From Anaeramoeba ignava BMAN (Eukaryota; Protista; Anaeramoebae): 64,000 nucleotides of DNA. The translations under genes and the position numbers were made by a program. The notes under the pieces are model-generated. The model searched no databases. It was not told the DNA's origin and saw only the letters and a list, made by a program, of their open reading frames with translations. The DNA lies in contig JAPDFW010000147.1 of NCBI GenBank assembly GCA_028826165.1, forward strand, positions 558,001 to 622,000. The letters run 5' to 3'. Below are positions 44,253 to 64,000 of this stretch, piece after piece (the first letter of the stretch is position 1; every line of letters begins with the position of its first letter).

Positions 44253-45024
44253 AATCAAAATAAAAACAAAAAACCTTTTCCAAATTTAAAATCATTTTAT
44301 TTTAATTTTAAATTTAAATTTTATAAATAAATTAATAAATAATTTAATATTAAATTTATTTAAAATTTTTATTAATAATTTTTTATTCCACTTTTTTTTA
44401 ATAATAAAAATTAAAATAAATTAAATAATAAAAATATTATTTTAATAAGTAATAATTTAATTTCAAATTAAAATAAAATTAAAATTAAATTAAATAATAA
44501 TTTAAAATTATTAAATTTCATTTTAAATTATTTATTAAAATATTTCAACTTTTTTATTAATTTTTTATAATCAAAATAAAAATAAAAAACCTTTTCCAAA
44601 TTTAAAATCATTTTATTTTAATTTTGAATTTAAATTTTATAAATAAATTAATAAATAATTTAATATTAAATTTATTTAAAATTTTTATTAATAATTTTTA
44701 TTCCACTTTTTTAATAATAAAATAAAAATAAATTAAATAATAAAAATATTATTTTAATAAGAAATAATTTAATTTCAAATTAAAATAAAATTAAAATTAA
44801 ATTAAATAATTATTTAAAATTATTAAATTTCATTTTAAATTATTTATTAAAATATTTCAATTTTTTTATTAATTTTTTATAATCAAAATAAAAACAAAAA
44901 ACCTTTTCCAAATTTAAAATCATTTTATTTTAATTTTAAATTTAAATTTTATAAATAAATTAATAAATAATTTAATATTAAATTTAATTAAAATTTTGAT
45001 TAATAATTTTTTATTCCACTTTTT
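44253..45024. repeat. ~313-bp AT-rich tandem repeat, left block (~2.5 copies)
   Basis: The anchor AATCAAAATAAAAA(C/T)AAAAAACCTTTTC occurs at ~44253, 44569 and 44881. Confidence 0.9.
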
Positions 45025-45277
45025 TCTTTCTATAAATATAAAAAATGAGAATAAGTTTAATTTAAAATTAATTTAAAAATTAATTTATTATTTAATTTAA
45101 TGTTTAAAATATTAATTTATTGTTTTAGATTTAAATAAAAATAAGAATCAATAAAAAAGTGGAATGAAAATTTGTTTTTTTTTTGATTTTTATTTTGTTT
45201 TTGTTTTGTTGGAATTGATTTGAAATGAAAATTAAAAATTGGAAATTGGAAATTGAAATTGGAATTAAATATCCAAA

Positions 45278-47980
45278 TCAGTATGAAGTTCTTTTTCTTT
45301 TGATAATTTCTTTAATAAGTTTTTTTCTTTTTTTCTTTTTATATAAAATAATTCCAATAATAATTATTGAAATAACAATAATTGGAATAATTATACCTAA
45401 AGTTATTAATATTCTGTTTGAATTATTATTAGGCTCATTTGTTGTTGGTATTGTAATTGATGTTGTTGAATTAATTCCTGAATATTGATTAAATGAACAA
45501 TTTAAATCAGCTGATGAATAAATTGAAATTTCATAATATTCTCCTCCATGTAATCCTGAAGAAATTGAATAAATTGTTGTTAAATTTGATAAACAAATTG
45601 AAGTCGAATTATAAGTAAATGAATATGCTTTTAATCCACTTGATAAAATTAATGAATCCCAAGTACATTCAAATCCATTAATTAATGAATTACAATTTAA
45701 TGAAGTAATATTTCCTAATTTAGCTCTTGTTGAAATAATTGAACTAGGTAATCCTAAATATGGTGTTTCACAATTTAAATCAACACATCCTCTAATTGAA
45801 ATATTATATTCAATATTTCCTGATATTTCACTTATTCTTCCAATTATTTCATTTCCACTTAAATCAAGAGATGTGAATTTTTCCCAATTTGTTTCATTAT
45901 CAAGTGAAATTGAATAATTATTTGAATTTGTTAATTTTGTGAAATTAAATTCAATTTCTTCAATTTTGGAAATTGTTTCATAAATTGTTGGAGATGTTAA
46001 ATTATCAGTTGTAATTGAAATTGATGAAATATATCCACATTTTCCATTTGAATTACATGATGATATATTGATTTGATATTCTTGATTTGGAAATTGAACT
46101 GTAAATTGTTGATTTGATGATGTTGGTTGATAATTTCCTGAATCATTTTGAGAAATTGATTGATAAGTTAAATTATAATAAAATGGAATTGAACAATTAA
46201 TTGGTTGATTCCAATTACAATTAATATCGATTGAATTTGAAATTGAACATGTTAAATTTGTAATTTCACCGAATATTAATGAAATTGATGATTCAACAAT
46301 TTCTCCTTTATCATCTCCTTCACATTCTTGTGTTCTACATCCACAAATTGAAATATTATAATCATTTTCACATTCTAAATTATTCAAAAAATAATCAAGT
46401 GAAGAATTATCAACTGAAATGAAAGATATTAAATCAGGTTGAGATTGATTGAAATAAGAAAGATTATAATGATCAAGATGAGCAATTCCTTCATTGATTT
46501 GAACATTTGGATAATTCCAAGTAACATTAATTGAATTATTTGAAGGATTTGATAATTGAAAATCTTTTACAGAATCAATTTTTGTTGTTAAATTAATAAA
46601 AGAAGAAGATTCACCACATTTCATTGTTTCATTATCACAAACTTTGATTTGAATTGAATAATATTCATTTCCAGTAATATTATCATAAATTGAAGAATTA
46701 AATTGTTGATAATAAACATTCTCATCTTCAAGAATTGGATAATCAATATCAATCCAATCATATCCATAATTAATTTGATATATCAAAGTTAAAGAAGATT
46801 GAATTTCATCCCAATAACAATCAAATGATGAAAACAATGTTGAACAATTAACAATATTAACTTGTGGAATTAAATTAACTTCATAAACAAATGCTTGATT
46901 TGCGCCAGGAGCACCAATAACAGTAAAATTCTCATAAATTGAAACAGACTCTCCAAAACCTGTAGTTGATTCACTCAAATTTTTTTCTTGATTCCAAATT
47001 GATTCATTATATCTGTAAATAAATGCTTCATTTGTACCAATAGCACCAATAACAATAATATCTCCATAAATTGAAACAAAATATCCAAACCATGAAGCTG
47101 AAGGTTCACTCAAATTTTGTTCTTGATTCCAAATTGATTCATTATATCTGTAAATAAATGCTTCATTTGTATCATAAGCTCCGATAACAATAACATCTTT
47201 ATAAATTGAAACAGAACTCCCAAAATTTGAATAAGAAGGTCCACTCAAATCTTGTTCTTGATTCCAAAATGTTCCATTATATCTGTAAATAAATGCTTCA
47301 TTTCCACCAATAGTTCCAATAACAGTAACATTCCCATAAATTGAAACACTCCATCCAAAATTTGAAACTGATTCATTCAAAGTTTGTTCAAGATTCCAAA
47401 TTGTTCCATTATATCTGTAAATATATGCTTTACTTTCAAGAGGAGCTCCAATAAAAGTAACATCTTCATAAATTGAAACAGAATGTCCAAACCATGAAAA
47501 TGGTCCAGTCAAATTTTGTTCTTGATTCCAAAATGTTCCATTATATCTGTAAATAAATACTTCATTTGCACCATGAGCACCAATAACAATAACATCTTCA
47601 TAAACTGAAACAGAATATCCAAAATTTGAAGTTGATTCATTCAAAATTTGTTCAAGTTCAAAATTTGTTCCATTATATCTGTAAATAAATGCTTGTTTTG
47701 CATCAGAAGCTCCAATAACAATAACATCTTTATAAACTGAAACAGAAATTCCAAAATTTAATGCTGGAAGTGAAAATTGATCTAATAAATTCCAAATCCA
47801 AGCTTCATCTGGAGTAGAATAATATCTTGTTGTTTCTGTTAATAATCTTGTTGTTTCTAATTCTTGAATTATTGTTGAAATTGATTTTTGTTGATTTTGA
47901 TTTTGATCTTGATTTTGATTTGATTGAATTAAGAAAATATTAATAATTAAGAAAAAGGAAAAGAAAAGAATTAATTTCAT
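45278..47980 (-). CDS. Type I membrane protein: signal peptide, FG-GAP (integrin-alpha-like) beta-propeller repeats, fibronectin-III-like domains, TM helix, short basic tail
   Basis: 900-aa intronless ORF with seven FGxSVSIY.....IGA repeats, Cys-paired FN3-like segments (INVTWNYP, YNISICGC), and TM ILITLGIIIPIIVISIIIIGIILY followed by KKKKRKK. Confidence 0.85.
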   Translation of the reverse strand: MKLILFFSFFLIINIFLIQSNQNQDQNQNQQKSISTIIQELETTRLLTETTRYYSTPDEAWIWNLLDQFSLPALNFGISVSVYKDVIVIGASDAKQAFIYRYNGTNFELEQILNESTSNFGYSVSVYEDVIVIGAHGANEVFIYRYNGTFWNQEQNLTGPFSWFGHSVSIYEDVTFIGAPLESKAYIYRYNGTIWNLEQTLNESVSNFGWSVSIYGNVTVIGTIGGNEAFIYRYNGTFWNQEQDLSGPSYSNFGSSVSIYKDVIVIGAYDTNEAFIYRYNESIWNQEQNLSEPSASWFGYFVSIYGDIIVIGAIGTNEAFIYRYNESIWNQEKNLSESTTGFGESVSIYENFTVIGAPGANQAFVYEVNLIPQVNIVNCSTLFSSFDCYWDEIQSSLTLIYQINYGYDWIDIDYPILEDENVYYQQFNSSIYDNITGNEYYSIQIKVCDNETMKCGESSSFINLTTKIDSVKDFQLSNPSNNSINVTWNYPNVQINEGIAHLDHYNLSYFNQSQPDLISFISVDNSSLDYFLNNLECENDYNISICGCRTQECEGDDKGEIVESSISLIFGEITNLTCSISNSIDINCNWNQPINCSIPFYYNLTYQSISQNDSGNYQPTSSNQQFTVQFPNQEYQINISSCNSNGKCGYISSISITTDNLTSPTIYETISKIEEIEFNFTKLTNSNNYSISLDNETNWEKFTSLDLSGNEIIGRISEISGNIEYNISIRGCVDLNCETPYLGLPSSIISTRAKLGNITSLNCNSLINGFECTWDSLILSSGLKAYSFTYNSTSICLSNLTTIYSISSGLHGGEYYEISIYSSADLNCSFNQYSGINSTTSITIPTTNEPNNNSNRILITLGIIIPIIVISIIIIGIILYKKKKRKKLIKEIIKRKRTSY

Positions 47981-48223: not shown

Positions 48224-49935
48224 AATAAAAATTAAATTTAAATTAAATAATAAAAATATTATTCTAATAAGTAATAATTTAATTTCAAATTAAAATTAAA
48301 TTAAAATTAAATTAAATAATAATTTAAAATTATTAAATTTCATTTTAAATTATTTATTAAAATATTTCAATTTTTTTATTAATTTTTTATAATCAAAATA
48401 AAAATAAAAAACCTTTTCTAAATTTAAAATCATTTTATTTTAATTTTGAATTTAAATTTTATAAATAAATTAATAAATAATTTAATATTAAATTTATTTA
48501 TAATTTTAATTAATAATTTTTATTAATAAAAATTAAAATAAATTTTCTTAATTTAATAAATTTAAAAATTAAAAATAAAAATTAAATAATTATTTAAAAT
48601 TATAAATTTATTTTAATTTATTAAAAATAATTTAATTTCAAATCAAAATAAAAATAATTTCAAATTAAATAATAATTTAAAATTATTAAATTTCATTTTA
48701 AATTATTTATTAAAATATTTCAATTTTTTATTAATTTTTATAATCAAAATAAAAATAAAAAAACCTTAAAATTAAATTTAAAATCATTTTTATTTTTATT
48801 TTAAATTTATTAAAAAATTTTTATAATTTTTATAATAAATTAATAAATTTAAAATAATTTAATATTAAATTTATTTTATAATTTTTAATTAATAATTTTT
48901 ATTCACTTTTATTTTTTTTAATAATTAAAAATTAAAATAAATTAAATAATAAAAATATTATTTTAATAAGTAATAATTTAATTTCAAATTAAAATTAGTA
49001 AATTAAAATTAAATTAAATAATAATTTAAAATTATTAAATTTCATTTTAAATTATTTATTAAAATATTTCAATTTTTATTAATTTTTATAATCAAAATAA
49101 AAACAAAAACCTTTTCTAAATTTAAAATCATTTTATTTTAATTTTAAATTTAAATTTTATAAATGAATTAATAAATAAATTTAATATTAAATTTATTTAT
49201 AATTTTTATTAATAATTTTTATTCCACTTTTTAATAATAAAAAAATTAAAATAAATTAAATAATAAAAATATTATTTTTAATAAGAAATAATTTAATTTC
49301 AAATTAAGATAAAATTAAAATCAAATTAAATATTAATTTAAAATTATTAAATTTCATTTTAAATTATTTATTAAAATATTTCAATTTTTATTAATTTTTA
49401 TAATCAAAATAAAAACAAAAACCTTTTCTAAATTTAAAATCATTTTATTTTAATTTTAAATTTAAATTTTATAAAGGAATTAATAAAATAATTTAATATT
49501 AAATTTATTTAAAATTTTTATTTAATAATTTTTATTCCACTTTTTTTTAATAATAAAAATAAAAATAAATTAAATAATAAAAATATTAATTTAATAAGAA
49601 ATAATTTAATTTCAAATTAAAATTAAATTAAAATCAAATTAAATAATTATTTAAAATTATTAAATTTCATTTTAAATTATTTATTAAAATATTTAAACTT
49701 TTTTATCAATTTTTTATAATCAAAATGAAAATAAAAAACCTTTTCTAAATTTAAAATCATTTTATTTTAATTTTAAATTTAAATTTTATAAATGAATTAA
49801 TAAATAATTTAATATTAAATTTATTTAAATTTTTATTTAATAATTTTTTATTCCACTTTTTTCTTAATAATAAAAATTAAAATAAATTAAATAATAAAAA
49901 TATTATTTTAATAAGTAATAATTTAATTTCACATC
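48224..49935. repeat. ~313-350-bp AT-rich tandem repeat, right block (~5 copies), same family and orientation as 44253..45024
   Basis: The same anchor occurs at ~48391, 48742, 49090, 49402 and 49718. Confidence 0.9.
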
Positions 49936-50049
49936 AAAATAAAATGATTTCAAATTGATTTATTAATTTTTTCATTTTTTCATTTTTTCATTTATTAATT
50001 TTTTTATTTTTCATTTTTTCATTTTTTTCATTTTTTTCTATTTTTCAAA

Positions 50050-51288
50050 ATGGAAGTTAAAACAACTATTTGTCCAATTTGCTTTCAAAAATTTTCACAA
50101 GAAAGAAAACCAATGATAATTTGTGAAGAGCATCATTCAATTTGTGAATCTTGTTTCAATACTCTGAATAAATGTCCTTTTTGTGCAAATTCATTGACAA
50201 ATTTTAAACCGATTCAGAATCTTGATTTATTAAAATCGATTGACCAAGAAGACACAAACTCAAATCTTTCTCAAATTCCAATAATTCCTTTAGATCAACT
50301 CGAAATTGAAAAAGAACCCTTTTCTTCTGGAATTTCAACTGATAATTTTCGAGCAACATGGAAGAAAAAACAAGTTATTATCAAAAAAACGAGAATTCAA
50401 ATTGATTCCAATTCACAAAAACAATTTGAAAATGAACTTAATTTGATTGGAAAACTAAAACATCCAAATATTCTCCCTATTTATGGAATCACTAAATTTG
50501 AAAATCGATTTTGTATTGTAATGAAATATGCGGAACAAGGAAATTTACTTGATAAAATCCCAAATTTACAATTCCAAGAAAAAATTGATTTATCTTTACA
50601 AATCATTGAAGGATTAAGATTTTTACATTCAAATTCAATTATCCATGGTGATCTAAAACTCAAGAATATCTTGATTTCCAAAAACAAACCAAAAATTTCT
50701 GATTTTGGAATGTCGCAATTAAGAGAGAAAACTACAGAAAACCTCGGAATCACTTTTTATTCCAATTATTTAGCACCAGAATTTCTTAAACAAGAAAAAT
50801 TTTCTGATACTTCTTGTGATATTTTTAGTTTATCAATCATCTTGTTTGAAATTTTCTCATCAAAACGATATTTCCACAAAAAGAATCGCAGAAAAGCTTT
50901 TATCAAAATGATGAACGAAAAAAGACCATATTTTCCAAACAATTTCCCAAAAGATTTATCAAAATTTATCAAAAAAGGTTGGAAAAAAAATCCACAAGAG
51001 AGATCTACATTAATCCAATTTATTCAATGTTTGGAGAAGATGAAAAATTCAAGTAAATATTTCTTCTTTTTAGTCGTTTCCTATTTTTCTTTCAATTTAA
51101 AATTCGAAATAACAAAAAACATTTAAAAATCTTATTCCTCAATTCATTTTGTGAATTCTCAAAACATTTTCTTTTCAATTCTAAAAATTCTTTTAGATCA
51201 ACCCGAAAAAAGAAAAGAACTCGAACAAACAAACCAACAACCAAACGAGAAAGAGAAAGAGAAAGAGAAAAAGAAGAAATCAAAATCA
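50050..51288 (+). CDS. RING-finger + TKL-like protein kinase; exon 1 50050..51052, exon 2 51197..51288; predicted to continue through microexons past the right edge
   Basis: RING CPIC...ICEEHHSICESC...KCPFC; kinase VIIKK, FENE, HPNIL, HGDLKLKNIL, DFG, YLAPE, DIFSL. Donor TCAA|GTAAAT at 51053. The acceptor TTTTAG|AT restores frame (NQPEKRKELEQ...KKKKSKS) and exon 2 ends in phase 0. Confidence 0.85.
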
Positions 51289-51364
51289 GTAAAAAATTTT
51301 TCAATTTATTAAATTCCAAATTCTTTTTCTAATTTCTTATTTTTATTATTTATTCATTTATCAG

Positions 51365-51779
51365 AAACGAAAGGTTAGTTTTCTCATTCATTAATTAATT
51401 TCTTTCCAGAAAGAAATAGAAACAAAAAATTACAAACAAAAAAAAATCATTTTCTTGTTTTTTCCTTTTAAATTATGAGAAAGAAATATTGATTCATATC
51501 AAATTATTTTTTGTATTAATAGAATGTAATTCATCAAATCAATAATATTTTCAGAATAGAAAAGATTTTTTTTTGGATAAATTTACTCTCAATAAATACA
51601 AATAACTCATTGAAAAATTCATATTCAATAAAAATTAAAAAAAATCAACAATGAATATTCATTTTTTTAATAAATAGAAAGTGAAAAATTAATTAAATCA
51701 ATTCCAATTAATTTTCTCCTCTTCAATTATTTATTAAATTCTATATTTTTTTTTCAACAATTATTTTCTCAAATAGAAA
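51365..51779 (+). other. Four predicted phase-0 microexons in unique sequence: 51365..51373 (KRK), 51523..51525 (N), 51678..51680 (K), 51777..51779 (K)
   Basis: TCAG|AAACGAAAG|GTTAGT; AATAG|AAT|GTAATT; AATAG|AAA|GTGAAA; AATAG|AAA|GTAATT. Confidence 0.55.
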
Positions 51780-52559
51780 GTAATTTATTAAATAATATTC
51801 CCAATGAGATTGATAAATATATTTCTTTTAATTGAAAAAAAAATATTCAGAGAGAAATACAAATGAAATAAAATTTTAAATTTCATTTTTTCAACAAAAA
51901 AAAACTAAAAAAATTGATATAAGAAAACTTTTTATTGTGTATTTGATATTTGAATGAGAATATATTTGATACTTTTAAATATTTTTTGTTTTAATTTGTT
52001 GATTGAAAGATTTTATCAAAAATTTACTTCTTTTTCTTTTCTCTGAATTTCTCTTAATTAAAGATTGATGAAATTTCGATTTGGGTTTGGATCTATTTTT
52101 TTTTTGATTTTAATAAATTAACATTTTGTTTATGTGTTATACGATATCGTTTTTGATAATTCTTAAAAAAATTATTGGAAAAACAATCCATCTTTCATTT
52201 CAAAATATTATTCCTTCTTTCCTTTCCAATTCGAATAAAAAAACAATAAATGAAACAGAAAATCTTTATCTGTAAATTCCCTTAAACAAAATGCATTGAA
52301 TAAATCAAAAATAATAAAATTTGAATTCATTATTCTTTTTATTTATTTATCCAAATTCACTTTTTTTCTTTTTGAAATCAAATAAAAATTACCAAATAAA
52401 TCTAACCATTGAGTATTTTAAGAATTTCTCTTGTTTTTTGTATTAAATGATATCGAGGAAAAAATCCAATCAAAATATTGAAAAGAATCAAAAAAAAGAT
52501 TTACAAACCTCTCCTGAAAGAAATATAGAGAAATCAAGAATTACATTCAAAAAAAATAA

Positions 52560-55500
52560 ATAAATTAATATTTATTATTATTATTTAATAAATAGTCTGT
52601 AAATAATTAAATTCAATAAATAAATAAATAAATAAATTAATATTTATTATTATTATTTAATAAATAGCATGTAAATAATTAAATTCAATAAATAAATAAT
52701 AAATATTTATTATTATTATTTAATAAATAGCATGTAAATAATTAAATTCAATAAATAAATAAATTAATATTTATTATTATTATTTAATAAATAGGAAGTA
52801 AATAATTAAATTCAATAAATAAATAATAAATTAATTAATATTTATTATTATTATTTAATAAATAGAATGTAAATAATTAAATTCAATAAATAAAATAATA
52901 AATTAATTAATATTTATTATTATTATTTAATAAATAGAATGAAAATAATTAAATTCAATAAATAAATAATAAATTAATTAATATTTTTATTATTATTATT
53001 TAATAAATAGCATGTAAATAATTAAATTCAATAAATAAATAATAAATTAATTAATATTTATTATTATTATTTAATAAATAGGATGTAAATAATTAAATTC
53101 AATAAATAAATAATAAATTAATTAATATTTATTATTATTATTTAATAAATAGGAAGTAAATAATTAAATTCAATAAAATAAATAATAAATTAATTAATAT
53201 TTATTATTATTATTTAATAAATAGTCTGTAAATAATTAAATTCAATAAATAAATAATAAATTAATTAATATTTATTATTATTATTATTTAATAAATAGGA
53301 TGTAAATAATTAAATTCAATAAATAAATAAAAAATAAATTAATATTTATTATTATTATTTAATAAATAGGAAGTAAATAATTAAATTCAATAAATAAATA
53401 ATAAAATAATTAATATTTATTATTATTATTTAATAAATAGAATGTAAATAATTAAATTCAATAAATAAATAAATAAATTAATTAATATTTATTATTATTA
53501 TTTAATAAATAGTCTGTAAATAATTAAATTCAATAAATAAATAATAAAATAATTAATATTTATTATTATTATTTAATAAATAGAATGTAAAATAATTAAA
53601 TTCGATAAATAAATAAATAAATTAATTAATATTTATTATTATTATTTAATAAATAGGATGTAAATAATTAAATTCAATAAATAAATAAATAAATTAATTA
53701 ATATTTATTATTATTATTTAATAAATAGTCTGTAAATAATTAAATTCAATAAATAAATAATAAATTAATTAATATTTATTATTATTATTTAATAAATAGG
53801 ATGTAAATAATTAAATTCAATAAATAAATAAATAAATAATAAATTAATTAATATTTATTATTATTATTTAATAAATAGTCTGTAAATAATTAAATTCGAT
53901 AAATAAATAATAAATTAATTAATATTTATTTATTATTATTATTTAATAAATAGCATGTAAATAATTAAATTCAATAAATAAATAATAAATTAATTAATAT
54001 TTATTATTATTATTTAATAAATAGAATGTAAATAATTAAATTCAATAAATAAATAAATAAATTAATTAATATTTATTATTATTATTTAATAAATAGGATG
54101 TAAATAATTAAATTCAATAAATAAATAATAAATTAATTAATATTTATTATTTATTATTTAATAAATAGGATGTAAATAATTAAATTCAATAAATAAATAA
54201 ATAAATAAATAAATAAATTAATATTTATTATTATTATTTAATAAATAGCTTGTAAATAATTAAATTCAATAAATAAATAATAAATTAATTAATATTTATT
54301 ATTATTATTTAATAAATAGTCTGTAAATAATTAAATTCAATAAATAAATAATAAATAAATTAATATTTATTATTATTATTTAATAAATAGGAAGTAAATA
54401 ATTAAATTCGATAAATAAATAATAAATTAATTAATATTTATTATTATTATTATTTAATAAATAGTCTGTAAATAATTAAATTCAATAAATAAATAAATAA
54501 ATAATTTAATATTTATTATTATTATTTAATAAATAGGAAGTAAATAATTAAATTCAATAAATAAATAATAAATTAATTAATATTTATTATTATTATTATT
54601 TAATAAATAGTCTGTAAATAATTAAATTCAATAAATAAATAATAAAATAATTAATATTTATTATTATTATTTAATAAATAGATTGTAAAATAATTAAATT
54701 CAATCAATAAATAAATAATAAAATTAATTAATATTTATTATTATTATTATTTAATAAATAGAATGTAAATAATTAAATTCAATAAATAAATAAATAATAA
54801 ATTAATTAATATTTATTATTATTATTATTTAATAAATAGTCTGTAAATAATTAAATTCAATAAATAAATAATAAATTAATTAATATTTATTATTATTATT
54901 TAATAAATAGTCTGTAAATAATTAAATTCAATCAATAAATAAATAATAAATTAATTAATATTTATTATTATTATTTTAATAAATAGGAAGTAAATAATTA
55001 AATTAAATAAATAATAAAATAATTAATATTTATTATTATTATTTAATAAATAGATTGTAAATAATTAAATTCAATAAATAAATAAATAATAAAATAATTA
55101 ATATTTATTTATTATTATTTAATAAATAGGAAGTAAATAAATTAAATTCAATAAATAAATAAATAATAAATTAATTAATATTTTATTATTATTATTTAAT
55201 AAATAGCTTGTAAATAATTAAATTTAATAAATAAATAATAAATTAATATTTATTATTATTATTTAATAAATAGTTTGTAAATAATTAAATTCAATAAATA
55301 AATAAATAAATAATTTAATATTTATTATTATTATTTAATAAATAGGATGTAAATAATTAAATTCGATAAATAAATAAATAAATAAATTAATATTTATTAT
55401 TATTATTTAATAAATAGGAAGTAAATAATTAAATTCAATAAATAAATAAATAATAAATTAATTAATATTTATTATTATTATTATTATTTAATAAATAGAA

Positions 55501-57220
55501 TGTAAATAATTAAATTCAATAAATAAATAATAATAAATTAATTAATATTTATTATTATTATTATTTAATAAATAGGATGTAAATAATTAAATTCGATAAA
55601 TAAATAAATAAAATAAATTAATATTTATTATTATTATTTAATAAATAGGAAGTAAATAATTAAATTCAATAAATAAAATAAATAAAAATAAATTAATATT
55701 TATTATTATTATTATTTAATAAATAGAATGTAAATAATTAAATTCAATAAATAAATAAATAAAATTAATTAATATTTATTATTATTATTATTATTTAATA
55801 AATAGAATGTAAATAATTAAATTCAATAAATAAATAAATAATAAATTAATTAATATTTATTATTATTATTATTTAATAAATAGAATGTAAATAATTAAAT
55901 TCAATAAATAAATAATAAAATAATTAATATTTATTATTATTATTATTTAATAAATAGATTGTAAAATAATTTAATTAAATTCAATAAAAAAAATAAATTA
56001 ATAAAAATTAATATAATTATATTTATTATTATTATTTAATAAATAGTCTGTAAATAATTAAATTCAATAAATAAATAATAAAATAATTAATATTTATTAT
56101 TATTATTTAATAAATAGTCTGTAAATAATTAAATTCAATAAATAAATAAATAAATTAATATTTAATTATTATTTATTATTATTATTATTTAATAAATAGC
56201 ATGTAAATAATTAAATTCAATAAATAAATAAATAAATAAATTAATTAATATTTATTATTATTATTTAATAAATAGGATGTAAATAATTAAATTCAATAAA
56301 TAAATAATTTAATAACAAGGATGTAAATAAATTAATTAATAAATATTTATTATTATTATTTAATAAATAGGATGTAAATAATTAAATTCAATAAATAAAT
56401 AATAAATTAATTAATATTTATTATTATTATTTAATAAATAGTCTGTAAATAATTAAATTCAAATAAATAAATAATAAATTAATTAATATTTATTTATTAT
56501 TATTATTTAATAAATAGTCTGTAAATAATTAAATTCAATAAATAAATAAATAAATTAATTTAATATTTATTATTATTATTATTTAATAAATAGGATGTAA
56601 ATAATTAAATTCAATAAATAAATAATAAATTAATTAATATTTATTATTATTATTTAATAAATAGTCTGTAAATAATTAAATTCGATAAATAAATAATAAA
56701 TTAATTAATATTTATTATTATTATTATTTAATAAATAGGATGTAAATAATTAAATTCAATAAATAAATAATAAATTAATTTATTTTTATTATTATTATTT
56801 AATAAATAACGAAGTAAATAATTAAATTCAATAAATAATAATAAATTAATTAATATTTATTATTATTATTATTATTTAATAAATAGAATGTAAATAATTA
56901 AATTCAATAAATAAATAAATAATAAATTAATTATTATTTATTATTATTATTTAATAAATAGGATGTAAATAATTAAATTCAATAAATAAATAATAAATAA
57001 ATTAATATTTATTATTATTATTTAATAAATAGGATGTAAATAATTAAATTCAATAAATCAATTAATTAATTAATATTTATTATTATTATTTAATAAATAG
57101 AATGTAAATAATTAAATTTAATAAATAAATAATAAAATAATTAATATTTATTATTATTATTTAATAAATAGATTGTAAATAATTAAATTCAATCAATAAA
57201 TAAATAATAAATTAATTAAT
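52560..57220 (+). other. Tandem array of ~64 units (~72 bp each), each an intron-like repeat plus a variable 3-nt microexon (left block)
   Basis: Unit GTAAATAATTAAATTCAATAAAT...TATTATTATTTAATAAATAG + NNN. First triplet TCT 52596..52598, last ATT 57172..57174. Joined translation SHHENNHDESDENSNDSDSHNDDLSESESINSSEIELFDENDENNNISSHDDDSSDSDENDDNI. The repeat itself is certain; the confidence applies to the microexon reading. Confidence 0.75.
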
Positions 57221-57353
57221 GGGCCTGTCCCAGGCCCATTTGCCAGAAAAAAAAAATAAAAAAAAATAATTAAACAATTTTTTAATTAATTTTTTTTTAA
57301 TTAATTTTTTTTTAATTAATTTTTTTTTAATTAATTTTTTTTTAATTAATTTT

Positions 57354-57438
<85 letters not shown>

Positions 57439-58431
57439 TCATTTCCAAAAAGTGGAATTTCTCTTTATTCCTTTTTTCAACAAATTTTCAAGTTGTCGAA
57501 TTGAGATAAAATCTCTTTTTTTTTGACTCAAAGAAAATAATTTGAGAATTAAATATCTGAAACGATAAACAATATTCATTTCCAAGCAATTAGCCAGAAG
57601 ATAAGGATTTAATCTCAGTTGAGAACAACCCCAACACATTAAAAGAACAAAAATCCCACAAGAATTTCCATCTCTCTGATTCCAATGATGCCAAATTTGT
57701 TTAATCACAAAATCCATATTTAAGTAATTTTTGATGAACTTTTGGAGATTTTTTGCAATTTGATAGGGAATTCGTGAAAAAAGCGTTGATTTACTGTTGA
57801 ATATTAACAATTCTCTTTGATTAAAATGTAGAAAAATCACCACATAATGCATATCATAATAGAAAATAAGAGGAATATATTGTTGTTCACTCACAGAGCA
57901 TTTCAAGAAGAAATCTATCATCTTTTGGAATTCTCTATGACATTTCATCATATGATATGGAAACATGCTTTGATTTATCATAGCTTGTGCATATTGTTTC
58001 AAAATTGTCTTCTCTCTCGTGTGAAAATTTATCAAGAAATTTATCCAACATTCTTCAATAGGAATTTGTGGGATTTGCTTAAAATAGTCCAGAAACTTCC
58101 ATAAAATGACAGAAGAAAATAGATTTTGAGACCAAATCACAAAAAGCAAAACCCATAGTTTGCGATCCCATGGTGAATTTTTATTATCAATTTCTTCTAA
58201 ATTTGGAGGCATACCTTCTAAACATTCTATTAAGGGATTAAATTGAAGTTCAAAAAATTCAGGACCTTGATATAATTTTTCAGACAGAAAGAATTCCAGA
58301 GAATTCATTATATCTGAAAAATCTAATAAGCCATGAAGGTCTATTCTGTACTCCCAATCTTCATTAATCCCAAGTTTTTCAAAATTTACAACTGGTGTTA
58401 CTAAAGTCAACCCTCTGATCTCATTGAGCAA
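57439..58431 (-). CDS. Ulp1/SENP-like (peptidase C48, clan CE) cysteine protease domain carried by the transposon
   Basis: YIPLIFYYDMHYVVIFL (His), LLIFNS (Asp position is Asn), QRDGNSCGIFVL (oxyanion Gln and catalytic Cys), followed by a FRYLIL helix. Confidence 0.7.
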   Translation of the reverse strand: MLNEIRGLTLVTPVVNFEKLGINEDWEYRIDLHGLLDFSDIMNSLEFFLSEKLYQGPEFFELQFNPLIECLEGMPPNLEEIDNKNSPWDRKLWVLLFVIWSQNLFSSVILWKFLDYFKQIPQIPIEECWINFLINFHTREKTILKQYAQAMINQSMFPYHMMKCHREFQKMIDFFLKCSVSEQQYIPLIFYYDMHYVVIFLHFNQRELLIFNSKSTLFSRIPYQIAKNLQKFIKNYLNMDFVIKQIWHHWNQRDGNSCGIFVLLMCWGCSQLRLNPYLLANCLEMNIVYRFRYLILKLFSLSQKKRDFISIRQLENLLKKGIKRNSTFWK

Positions 58432-58623
58432 ATTAGCTTTTTAGTAGGATCCTCTCGAGCTGAACCTTTACCGAAATTTCTCAATTCTCGAAAACCAAAT
58501 TTGGGATAAGTTTTTCAATTCTTTTGGATTCACTTACATTAGTGACTTCCATTTTTGAGAGTAATCAAAAGTTCGATTCTTTCTTCTCAATACTTGAAAC
58601 CTCTTCTATTTCCATAAATTTTC

Positions 58624-60935
58624 CTACAAAATCTTTTTGGCAATCTCTGTGTTCTTTTCTTCCTCATTGATTCGATCATCCATCTCAAAAATGATTTTCT
58701 TTTCAATTTTCTCTTTTCTTTTCCCCACTTTTCTCCTCTTTAAACAGGAAATAAATCCATTATCAATTTTTATCATTGTTGTATTCTCATTATTTTGGTT
58801 TCTCTTTTGATTTCTCTTTTGATTTCTCTTTTGATTTCTCTTTTGATTTCTCTTTTGATTTCTCTTTTGATTTCTCTTTTTATTTTCATTTTCATTTTCA
58901 CTTTCACTTTCATTTTGATTTTGATTTTGAATTTGAATTTGATTTTTATTTTTATTTTGATTTTGATTTTGATTTTGATTTTCATTTTCATTTTGATTTT
59001 CATTTTGATTTTCATTTTGATTTTGATTTTGATTTTGATTTTGATTTTCATTTTGATTTTCATTTTGATATTCACTTTGATATTCATTTTGATATTCATT
59101 TTCAGTTTCATATTCACTTTGATATTCATTTTCATTTTCATTTTCATTTTCATATTCACTTTGATATTCATTTTCATTTTCATTTTCAGTTTCATTTTCA
59201 CTTTGATATTCATTTTCATTTTCATTTTCAGTTTCATTTTCACTTTGATATTCATTTTCACTTTGATATTCATTTTCACTTTGATATTCATTTTCATTTT
59301 CACTTTGATATTCACTTTGATATTCATTTTGATATTCATATTCATTTTCATATTCACTTTGATATTCATTTTCATTTTCATTTTCATTTTCATTTTCACT
59401 TTGATTTTCATTTTGATTTTCATTTTCATTTTCATTTTCATTTTCATTTTGATTTTCATTTTGATTTTCATTTTCATTTTCATTTTGATTTTCACTTTGA
59501 TATTCATTTTCATTTTCATTTTGATTTTCACTTTGATTTCTCTTTTTATTTCTCTTTTGATTTCTATTTTGATTTCTATTTTGATTTCTCTTTTTATTTT
59601 CATTTTCATTTTCACTTTCACTTTCATTTTCATTTTGATTTTGATTTCTCTTTTGGTTTCTCCTTTGATTTCTCTTTTGATTTCTCTTTTGATTTCTATT
59701 TTTCTCTTTTTCTTCTTTTTCCTTCTGTTTTCTGATTCTTTCCTCTTTTTTCCGCTTGTTAATTATTCTTCTCTTCTCTTGCTTAATTTCCACATTTTTC
59801 CATTCTTTTTCATCTCTAAATGTTTTTCGTAAAGATCCATTTCCTAATTTAAAATTATATAAAAGTGCACACACTTCGATTACTTGAATATGAAATTGTT
59901 TCTTGAGTTGAACCTTTTCCTTCAAAATTTTCCATTTTTTCAAGATCGAGAAAACATTTTCGATAATACATCGATAGCGGTTTATATGAAAATTATATTT
60001 TTTATGGTTATTCTTTTTGTTTCTATACTCTCTTTTGGGTGTAATACAATATATAGCTGGAAATGCTTTATCTCCAAGAATTTTATGGGATTTCAATAGT
60101 TCAAGAAGTCCAGATTTTGTTGTTGCCTTGGAATCATGCATGCTCCCTTGGAATCCAGTTTTGAAAAATATGATTTTCCCCTTACTATTGCACACAACAA
60201 TAGATTTGAGAGAAGAATGTCCTCTTTTGACAGAATGATATTTTTTTTCTTTCAAAAGATTCCGAAATCTGGGATGATCTGTCCCATCGATTACCCCAAC
60301 ACAGTTGGGGATTTTTCTTGATTGCCATTTTCGAATTTCTCTTATCCTCTCTTCTCTTGTTAACCAGTGAATTTGGTTGTTGAGAATTTCTCTTAATAAA
60401 GGAACAATTTTTTTTAAATATCTTTCGACTGTACTCTTTCCAATTTTCCACATGGCTCCTAAGATGCGATAAGTGAGAGAATGCCTTAACCATGTTAATG
60501 TGAGTAATAATTTATTTGGAAGATCAAGGGAAGGAATTTGAGATGGAGAAGAAAGAAGATTTTGGGAAGAAGTAGGATGCTCTTGTTGATAAATTTCAAT
60601 TTTGGAAAGAATTTCTTCAAATTGTGAAAAGACAATCCAGTCATATCGGGAGATAAGATATGAGAATTTCTTATTTCTGAATATAGATCCCTTTTCTCTG
60701 AAGAACGAAAATCCAAATTTGGTATAACATTCTGAGAGAATTTATCATTTTGATTCAATTCTTGTAAAAGAGTTGCGTTTTTTGTTTTTAGAAAGAAAGA
60801 AGAAGAGCAAAGATTTAATAAATTTTGGATAACCTATATTTGGTGCCCCAAGTTTATCAAGAATTTCTTTCGTTTGTCGATAAATTCTTATTTGAGGATG
60901 TTTTTCATTCGTTTTTGATTTCGTGTTGATTTCAT
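58624..60935 (-). CDS. Harbinger/HARBI1-like DDE transposase with HTH and a long EN/QN/EYQS low-complexity tail; 5' part frameshifted
   Basis: GVIDGT, KYHSVKRGHSSLKSIVVC, GSMHDS, LGDKAF, YNFHINRYRCIIENVFSILKKWKIL. An HTH segment LLLTLTWLRHSLTYRILGAMWKIGKSTV lies upstream. Candidate ATG at 60935. Confidence 0.88.
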
Positions 60936-61287
60936 ATGAAAAAGCAAAAAAAAAATTTGTTGTTTGTAAAAAGAAGAAAAATGAAAAGAAAAATAAAAAG
61001 AAAAATAAAAGAAAAATTAAAATAGAATAAATAAAGACAATTCTTTTTAGTTGGAAGATTTCAAGAAAAATTCTAAAAACAAAAATAAAGTGAAGTTATG
61101 AGATCCTTTTGAATAGAAATGTTTTATAAAATTTAAAAAAGATTTTTTATTTATTTTTTTTTCTTGATTTTTTTCGAAATTTCTTTTTCGTTTCCTTCTC
61201 AAGACAATAATGTTAATTTTTGAATTTCATGTTGGATTGAAAGTTTATTTGATGATTAAATTTTTTTGTCGACACCGGGACGAGCCC

Positions 61288-64000
61288 AATATTTATTATT
61301 ATTATTATTTAATAAATAGGAAGTAAATAATTAAATTCAATAAATAAATAATAAATTAATTAATATTTATTATTATTATTTAATAAATAGTCTGTAAATA
61401 ATTAAATTCAATAAATAAATTAATTAATATTTATTATTATTTAATAAATAGAAAGTAAATAATTAAATTTAATTAATAAATAATATTTAATTAATATTTA
61501 TTATTATTATTATTTAATAAATAGAAAGTAAATAATTGAATCCAATAATTAATTAATAAAATAATTAATATTTATTATTATTATTTAATAAATAGCCTGT
61601 AAATAATTAAATTCAATAAATAAATAATAAATTAATTAATATTTATTATTATTATTTAATAAATAGTTTGTAAATAATTAAATTCAATAAATAAATAATA
61701 AATTAATAAATATTTATTATTATTATTTAATAAATAGTTTGTAAATAATTAAATTCAATAAATAAATAATAAATTAATTAATATTTATTATTATTATTTA
61801 ATAAATAACTTGTAAATAATTAAATTCAATAAATAAATTAATTAATTAATATTTATTATTATTATTTAATAAATAGGGAGTAAATAATTAAATTCAATAA
61901 ATAAATAATATTTATTATTATTATTTAATAAATAGTTTGTAAATAATTAAATTCAATAAATAAATAATAAATTAATTAATATTTATTATTATTATTTAAT
62001 AAATAGCTTGTAAATAATTAAATTAAATAAATAAATTAATTAATTAATATTTATTATTATTATTTAATAAATAGAGAGTAAATAATTAAATTCAATAAAT
62101 AAATAATTAATTAATTAATATTTATTGTTATTATTTAATAAATAGAATGTAAAATAATTAAATTCAATAAATAAATTAATTAATATTTATTATTATTATT
62201 TAATAAATAGCTTGTAAATAATTAAATTCAATAAATAAATAATAAATTAATTAATTAATATTTATTATTATTATTTAATAAATAGTTTGTAAATAATTAA
62301 ATTCAATAAACCAATTAATTAATTAATATTTATTATTATTATTTAATAAATAGAGAGTAAATAATTAAATCTAAAAATATCAATAAAATTCAAAAAAAAA
62401 CAAATAAAATTATTATTTATTTAATAAATAGAGAGTAAATAATTAAATTCAATAAATCAATAATTAAGAATTTTATTATAAATATTCAAAATAAATATCT
62501 TTTTTTTCAATAAACAGAATGTAAATAAAACAATTATTTTCAAAATTATAAACAAATTTATTCATTTTTAAAATTGATTATTTAATAAATAGGAAGTAAA
62601 TTATTGATAATTTATAATTGAAAAATGGAGAATGATTCAATTTTTGAATAATGAAAATATCAATAAATGAAAATATTTATTAATTTTTTTTTGAAAATTT
62701 AAAATTAATTCAAAAATAAACAGCCTGTAAATCATTAAATTCAAAACCATTTAAACATCAAAATAAATTATTTATTATTATTATTATTATTTAATAAATA
62801 GCGAGTAAATAATTAAATCCAATAAATAAATAATTAATTAAATTAATATTTATTATTATTATTATTTAATAAATAGAATGTAAATAATCAACTTCAATAA
62901 ATTAATAATTAATACTTATTATTATTTAATAAATAGCATGTAAATAATTCAATTCAATAAATAAATTAAATAATACTTATTATTATTATTATTTAATAAA
63001 TAGTCTGTAAATAATTAAATTCAATAAATCAATTAATTAATTAATATTTATTATTATTATTTAATAAATAGAGAGTAAATAATTAAATCTAAAAATATCA
63101 ATAAAATTCAAAAACAAATAAAATTATTATTTATTTAATAAATAGAGAGTAAATAATTAAATTCAATAAATCAATAATTAAGAATTTTATTATAAATATT
63201 CAAAATAAATATCTTTTTTTTCAATAAACAGAATGTAAATAAAACAATTATTTTCAAAATTATAAACAAATTTATTGATTTTTAAAATTGATTATTTAAT
63301 AAATAGGAAGTAAATTATTGATAATTTATAATTGAAAAATGGAGAATGATTCAATTTTTGAATAATGAAAATATCAATAAATGAAAATATTTATTAATTT
63401 TTGAAAATTTAAAATTAATTCAAAAATAAACAGCCTGTAAATCATTAAATTCAAAACCATTTAAACATCAAAATAAATTATTTATTATTATTATTATTAT
63501 TTAATAAATAGCGAGTAAATAATTAAATCCAATAAATAAATAATTAATTAAATTAATATTTATTATTATTATTATTTAATAAATAGCCTGTAAATAATCA
63601 ACTTCAATAAATTAATAATTAATACTTATTATTATTTAATAAATAGTCTGTAAATAATTAAATTCAATAAATAAAATTAAATAATACTTATTATTATTTA
63701 ATAAATAGTTTGTAAATAATTAAATTCAATAAATAATAAATTAATTAATATTTATTATTATTATTTAATAAATAGAGAGTAAATAATTAAATCTAAAAAT
63801 ATCAATAAAATTCAAAAACAAATAAAATTATTATTTATTTAATAAATAGGAAGTAAATAATTAAATTCAATAAATCAATAATTAAGAATTTTATTATAAA
63901 TATTCAAAATAAATATCTTTTTTTTCAATAAACAGAATGTAAATAAAACAATTATTTTCAAAATTATAAACAAATTTATTCATTTTTAAAATTGATTATT
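61288..64000 (+). other. Continuation of the intron/3-nt microexon array (~36 units; runs off the right edge)
   Basis: First triplet GAA 61320..61322, last AAT 63936..63938. Joined translation ESKKPFFLGFLRNLFRRNEPRNHSRRNEPRPSFREN. It includes longer, diverged units with CAG acceptors. Confidence 0.75.

Follow-up and report, generated by a model that had tools for sequence, protein, structure and literature searches.

A tandem array of candidate single-codon exons downstream of a RING-like protein kinase gene in Anaeramoeba ignava

The window analysed here is a stretch of 64,000 nucleotides (C137:558001-622000) within the 42.8-Mb genome of the anaerobic metamonad amoeba Anaeramoeba ignava; positions below are those of the window unless another locus is named. 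It contains a RING-finger/protein kinase gene and, downstream on the same strand, an array of about 105 intact tandem units spanning 12 kb, each with exactly three bases between an AG and a GT. The best available model, to which we give a probability of about 0.4, is that this array encodes the C-terminal tail of the kinase, its triplets being spliced together and translated in phase 0. That the small units are spliced and translated is inferred from the DNA. The gene and the small units that precede the array are laid out as follows (a slash marks a splice boundary).

50050-51052, plus strand: exon 1 of the RING-finger/protein kinase gene, 334 codons plus 1 nt, with its ATG at 50050 and a phase-1 end
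51053-51196, plus strand: intron 1, 144 nt (GTAAAT...TTTTAG), at a phase-1 position conserved in the family and spliced in the public model
51197-51288, plus strand: exon 2, a 92-nt K/E-rich linker after the acceptor TTCTTTTAG, with a phase-0 end before GTAAAAAA
51365-51373, plus strand: candidate 9-nt exon AAACGAAAG (KRK) between CAG and the atypical donor GTTAGT, skipped by the public model
51523-51525, plus strand: isolated single-codon unit AAT (TAATAG/AAT/GTAATT), the acceptor of which is used by the public model, which then reads on
51678-51680, plus strand: isolated single-codon unit AAA (AATAAATAG/AAA/GTGAAA), a diverged array unit
51777-51779, plus strand: isolated single-codon unit AAA (CAAATAG/AAA/GTAATT)
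51780-52595, plus strand: putative long intron of 816 nt with decayed array units, e.g. ATATAG-AGA-AA near 52527

Exon 1 encodes a protein kinase domain (Pkinase, PF00069; Pfam) at residues 103-325, detected with an E-value of 1.3e-45 and 156.3 bits against a cut-off of 31.7. A Cys/His pattern is visible at residues 8-46 of the protein, and no RING profile reached its curated cut-off in exon 1 (Sina_RING, 25.5 against 29.3 bits; other RING models lower); judged by its residues, the N-terminal domain is RING-like only. The translation of exon 1 is 100% identical to the 408-aa A. ignava NCBI model P0001. In a search with the exon 1 protein, all A. ignava matches were NCBI genome-derived models, and no transcript-derived protein was found. 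The genome, which is 80.65% A+T overall and 91.9% A+T in introns, was published with RNA-seq mapped with HISAT2 (PMC11550330), and exons of 3 nt therefore cannot be placed by that mapping. The kinase itself has an unusual catalytic loop, HGDLKLKN (50650-50675), against HRDLKPEN in at least five paralogues. It keeps the Asp and Asn of the loop, loses the Arg and has a DFG motif (ISDFG), and is predicted to be a non-RD variant inside an RD family.

Exon 1 ends at TCA A/GTAAAT (51052/51053), in phase 1, as an earlier note on this DNA had proposed. That note had considered that the mRNA might instead read through the donor; the stop would then lie at 51124-51126. At least 45 RING-kinase paralogues are present in the genome, and in 17 of the 20 examined, A/GTAA stands in phase 1 at the homologous codon, at the end of the large exon. 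Because phase and position are kept in this way, the 51053 donor is a conserved intron boundary rather than a point of read-through. Joined to the carried A, exon 2 translates to NQPEKRKELEQTNQQPNEKEKEKEKKKKSKS with no stop before its donor; it restores the frame as had been claimed, and corresponds to residues 335-365 of P0001, which is spliced at the exon 2 donor. These comparisons with the paralogues and the public model indicate that intron 1 and exon 2 are real. The third exon of P0001 joins the donor at 51289 to an acceptor at 51521-22 and then runs straight through AAT/GTAATT to a TGA ending at 51654. Its text is T-rich and junk-like, and the 9-nt candidate is skipped. No remnants of a paralogue C-terminal domain were found in 51000-52700 (best tblastn E-value, 0.77).

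The 9-nt candidate and the three isolated units were present, in unique DNA, where they had been reported. We detected three instances of [AT]AG-NNN-GT[AG]A in 51289-52560 against 0.08 expected, none of 2000 dinucleotide shuffles containing three, and elsewhere in the window the density of the motif is about 0.1 per kb. The isolated units are thus beyond chance. They can be regarded as diverged copies of the array unit, since their flanks still resemble it, and this part of the earlier proposal stands. The further exons suspected in 51780-52595 were not recovered: no intact AG-NNN-GT was found there, and the interval holds decayed units only.

The array and what follows it comprise these features.

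52550-57221, plus strand: array part 1, 62 intact units of ~71 bp, TTTAATAAATAG-NNN-GTAAATAATTAAAT..., with S/D/N/E/H-rich triplets
52938-52940, plus strand: donor-less unit AAT, with GA in place of GT after the triplet
57222-61289, minus strand: PIF/Harbinger-type DNA transposon of 4,068 bp in an array spacer, with ends GGGCCTGTCCCAGGCCC... and ...GTCGACACCGGGACGAGCCC
61290-64000 and 767 nt past the window end, plus strand: array part 2, 43 units in all, with R/P/F/E/N-rich triplets
L011:958-969 (958-969 nt beyond the window end), plus strand: candidate terminal exon GAT CAT AAT TGA, after an acceptor

The array has a period of 71 bp with 90% matches (TRF). The first triplet of part 1 is TCT at 52596-52598 and the last lies at 57172-57174; part 2 contains three higher-order blocks of ~710 bp at the end of the array. 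Parts 1 and 2 are a single array split by the transposon. Three of ~108 units are broken, by loss of the donor at 52938 and of the acceptor at 56810 and 61809; each of the two acceptor losses would merely skip one codon. The joined text SHHENNHDES read earlier from the first units wrongly counts, as its sixth unit, the AAT at 52938-52940, which lacks a donor. The triplets at the kinase locus spell low-complexity text and do not complete a recognisable repeat domain.

The expectation that the array runs past the window and that its stop lies beyond was borne out. The last unit, AGA, stands 767 nt past the window end and is followed by a 187-nt spacer ending in AAAAATAG and by the candidate terminal exon. 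Beyond this exon come ~165 nt of unique, G+C-richer sequence and then a 312-bp satellite. The unique segment is single-copy, and no link from the array to the kinase family was found through it. The 312-bp satellite, present here from L011:1130 onwards, is AT-rich and was also observed at 44253-45025 and at 48852-49945, just upstream of the kinase ATG; it seems to mark intergenic spacers. The whole 15-kb unit of kinase and array is bracketed by it. Another repeat, TTTTTCA, was seen ~20-250 nt upstream of the start codons of unrelated genes (49950-50049; L001:8420-8560; L005:6300-6350; L006:5240-5300) and is possibly a core promoter motif of this genome. Neither the 312-bp satellite nor this promoter-like repeat was found between kinase and array. 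The gene, intron 1, exon 2, the anatomy and extent of the array and the sister loci described below are established.

Variation within the array is almost confined to the triplet. The minor-allele fraction is 0.62, 0.36 and 0.16 at triplet positions 1, 2 and 3, against 0.019 in the flanks. Twelve bases 5' of the triplet and five 3' of it are invariant across 56 units, four of the twelve and all of the five having been fixed by the pattern with which the units were selected. Between higher-order blocks A and B, 5/27 triplet bases differ against 3/676 others, and between A and C the values are 11/27 and 21/664. In several cases, a triplet has been swapped at two or three of its bases for another one that is frequent in other parts of the array. 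Exchange between units whose flanks are identical suffices to produce such differences, and hypermutation need not be invoked. The uneven variation along the unit and the fixed strand relation to the upstream exon contradict a plain neutral satellite, in agreement with what had first been suspected.

All 105 intact array units and the three isolated units (51289 to 800 nt past the window end, gene strand) contain exactly 3 nt between the sites, and none is a stop codon. Likewise, no TAA, TAG or TGA triplet was found among 219 units with strict flanks genome-wide. The G+C content of the triplets is 0.46, 0.34 and 0.00 by position, and the spacers around them have hardly any G or C. From position-specific composition, 16.6 stops are expected in 337 units (arrays and paralogues together), and none was seen. 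We rejected stop-codon avoidance as decisive proof of coding: the units are mutual copies, and if the 26 triplet types are counted instead, the expectation is only 1.1 stops.

Other large arrays of the same unit family were found at three loci only.

C1:409.3-412.9 kb (L001/L002): BTB gene, coiled-coil exon, isolated units and array
C57:593.6-597.5 kb (L003/L004): BTB gene, coiled-coil exon, isolated units and array
C87:271.4-278.5 kb (L005/L006): ~70 units, with triplets mostly ATT/CTT/TTT/GCT/GTT and a central GAA/AGA cluster

Across the four arrays, the middles of the spacers differ in sequence and in length (71, ~75, ~86 and ~108 bp), while TTTAATAAATAG and GTAAATAATTAAAT are kept, the 12-14 nt proximal to the splice sites being identical in all four. 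Such conserved splice-like ends with diverged middles are the pattern that a splicing constraint would produce. Each of the four arrays lies downstream of an exon on the same strand whose frame stays open up to a consensus donor, in phase 0, and each is followed by an acceptor, two or three codons and a stop. The BTB genes on C1 and C57 are paralogous and continue through an intron into a K/E/N/Q-rich coiled-coil exon that ends in phase 0 at GTAAAT, and then into the units. Three isolated single-codon units (CAA, TAT or AAA, and AAA) precede the array at both loci. Since C1 and C57 are paralogous, the gene-to-array layout amounts to three independent cases. As far as sequence comparison can tell, this architecture, with a normal exon followed by ever smaller exons and then by an array, recurs from locus to locus.

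The C87 array has its own open coiled-coil 5' exon, ending at AAG/GTACTT in phase 0, with the promoter-like TTTTTCA repeat before it; the BTB-TLDc gene upstream ends at its own conserved stop. This 5' exon possibly begins with a 4-nt exon, ATGA/GTAAGC. Taken as codons, the triplets of C87 give two hydrophobic stretches around a charged segment. We set aside this clustering of charged residues as evidence, as local duplication could yield the same. The C1 array ends at a strong acceptor with TTT AAA TAA, and that on C87 at an acceptor with TCT GAT TGA. The segment 3' of the C1, C57 and C87 arrays has three copies only in the genome, and was found neither in the window nor in the rest of the genome.

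Single-codon units also occur in the kinase family itself. Downstream of the 20 paralogues, the motif was counted 128 times in sense and 4 times in antisense orientation. One paralogue (L027) has 96-nt exons (xTPxHYLCQN...) with three single-codon units between them: GAA-GAT-GAA, AAA-GAT-GAA and ACT-TTT-CAA. From the N of 'N.K' to the T of 'TPLH', there are seven residues when these units are included, which is the canonical ankyrin spacing, and four when they are not. Single 96-nt exons match Ank_3 weakly (E-values 0.05-0.1).

We therefore favour a model, conditional on splicing, in which the array belongs to the kinase transcription unit and would have arisen by tandem amplification of a module made of a single-codon exon and a ~68-nt intron, of the kind present between the 96-nt ankyrin exons of the paralogous RING-kinase-ankyrin genes. 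The spacers would be spliced out like other short introns, each with GTAAATAATT as its 5' site and TTTAATAAATAG as its branch/3' site. Translated in phase 0, the triplets would give a low-complexity tail, S/D/E/N/H-rich at first and R/P/F-rich later, which would end at GAT CAT AAT TGA beyond the window. Because every exon is 3 nt long, any donor could join any later acceptor with the frame unbroken, and different transcripts could therefore have tails of different length and content. The array itself evolves by duplication of units and by exchange between them, which reshuffles the triplets. A bolder form of the model is a translated 'codon cassette', in which differing subsets of more than 100 single-codon exons would be spliced together to give varied C-terminal tails, with codon order reshuffled by unequal exchange, so that a satellite would at the same time be coding; we consider this form unlikely.

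Several observations weigh against a translated tail, and many of them favour another explanation, namely that the kinase mRNA ends before the array and that the array is an untranslated, intron-derived satellite, the outcome of a runaway process in which a microexon-intron module was duplicated in tandem at the 3' edge of the gene. Three ends of the mRNA would then be conceivable: a stop ~25 nt past the exon 2 donor if this donor is read through, the 51654 stop, or a short terminal exon downstream of the isolated units. The public model does end the protein at the stop at 51654, and other short terminal exons are possible, e.g. after a CAG near 51851. The 816 nt of decayed units that part the isolated units from the array are what is seen at satellite edges. 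If the acceptor of the donor-less unit at 52938 is used, the sequence reads AAT GAA AAT AAT TAA after five array codons. A transposon sits within the array and has been tolerated there. Exchange between identically flanked units can explain the triplet differences between blocks without selection, and the avoidance of stops, strong only when each unit is taken as an independent case, is weak by triplet type. At the sister loci, the exon that precedes the array carries one frameshift on C1 and several on C57, where two units of 2 nt also occur, so such arrays can persist without an intact frame. Against this explanation, a neutral satellite should vary evenly, and here variation is concentrated 10- to 40-fold in the triplet. 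Moreover, bases proximal to the splice sites have been kept in four arrays despite their diverged spacer middles, all four arrays lie on the strand of an upstream open phase-0 exon, and the third exon of the public model is T-rich, junk-like text. On balance, we regard an untranslated satellite as somewhat unlikely.

The transposon was characterised by a transposase on the minus strand (DDE_Tnp_4, PF13359; E-value 9.9e-30). A copy 96.5% identical to it lies on C134 in an (AAAATT)n tract within an intron of a casein kinase 1 gene, antisense to its host gene. The 3-bp target duplication is AAT at the insertion in the array and ATT at the C134 copy, and the terminus occurs four times in the genome. 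With its transposase, 3-bp duplication and repeated copies with defined ends, the insert is a PIF/Harbinger element. A second open reading frame of the transposon (57439-58431, minus strand, 330 aa) has no clear family. The antisense orientation of the element in an array spacer, like that of its sister copy in a true intron, supports the reading of the spacers as introns of the kinase gene.

The same insertion could also be a sign of decay. The array might be a relic of a spliced 3' part, present transcripts being truncated or degraded and the kinase functioning with a short tail, and the broken units at 52938, 56810 and 61809 would fit this, as would the frameshifted exons of C1 and C57, which share the layout, and the 2-nt units on C57. 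However, the broken units are 3 of ~108, two of them acceptor losses at the cost of a codon, and an antisense transposon is commonly tolerated in an intron, the copy within the casein kinase 1 gene on C134 being an example. The kinase array also has no 2-nt or 4-nt units and no stop triplets. A decaying relic thus appears distinctly improbable. It is highly improbable that the array is transcribed separately, from a start of its own and with no relation to the kinase mRNA: the C87 array does appear to be such a separate unit, having its own coiled-coil exon and TTTTTCA repeat behind a gene with a conserved stop, and an ATG-initiated frame of 38 codons lies just 5' of the kinase array (~52448-52564), but this frame lacks a GT donor and continues into a decayed unit, and neither the TTTTTCA repeat nor the intergenic satellite parts kinase from array.

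A literature search for tandem arrays of 3-nt exons found nothing comparable. The nearest case is the NACHT-ankyrin (NANK) family of Tuber melanosporum, in which codon-sized microexons have been proposed to diversify proteins by alternative splicing (Iotti et al. 2012, cited in PMC4986451). As far as that account of the family goes, the two systems share exons of 3 nt with canonical splice sites, several per gene, in an expanded family with ankyrin repeats, and the paralogous RING-kinase-ankyrin genes of A. ignava have the same layout. They differ in that A. ignava has ~105 head-to-tail units with near-identical spacers in a satellite-like array of 12 kb, known here from DNA alone, and in that this array stands at the 3' end of the kinase gene rather than inside a repeat domain. 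Furthermore, Tuber is a fungus, whereas A. ignava is a metamonad.

The micro-exon genes (MEGs) of Schistosoma carry runs of symmetric exons of 6-36 nt, the skipping of which keeps the frame and yields variable secreted proteins. Their introns are not known to be cloned copies of one another, whereas the A. ignava units have 3 nt and introns that are tandem copies. Recursive splice sites (AG/GT ratchet points) of long animal introns, like the units of the array, juxtapose 3' and 5' sites and allow a long stretch to be removed stepwise. They leave 0 nt, in contrast to the units described here, which would leave 3 nt per step, to be read as a codon. The array also resembles an ordinary AT-rich satellite in its tandem 71-bp units, higher-order blocks, decayed edges and homogenised units. 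It differs from one in that variation is confined to the three bases between AG and GT, in that its strand is fixed to that of an upstream open exon and in that its splice-site-like ends are conserved.

If the triplets are spliced and translated, no other known run of single-codon exons would come near the array in length, and the array would exemplify coding sequence with the evolutionary mode of a satellite, in which units are duplicated and exchanged. It would also mean that a spliceosome can handle 3-nt exons serially, and such an array would be a simple means of varying protein tails in length and sequence. There are practical consequences even for an untranslated array. Exons of 3 nt escape standard aligners and gene predictors, and many genes in the public A. 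ignava models consequently finish in read-through junk, P0001 and P0002 being examples; the RING-kinases, at least 45 in number, need to be annotated anew.

A few further observations were made at these loci. The public model P0002, at L014 (C27:68473-70520), ends in read-through junk; the DNA there has an ankyrin-like exon, ...DWNKKD/GTAAAA, followed by GAA and TAT units and then by an acceptor with TTC ATT TGA. Microexons in the BTB-TLDc gene on L005 were considered in a homology test and rejected, as the gene changes frame within one stretch. This change lies at L005:5017-5045, where ...KRNMLFGMV* stands against ...YALWYGLENGSNFGG..., and a frameshift, a very short intron or an error in the assembly could account for it. 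Finally, upstream of the kinase gene, a 132/264-nt tandem repeat of coding-like composition was observed at 46884-47756, by its appearance on the minus strand.

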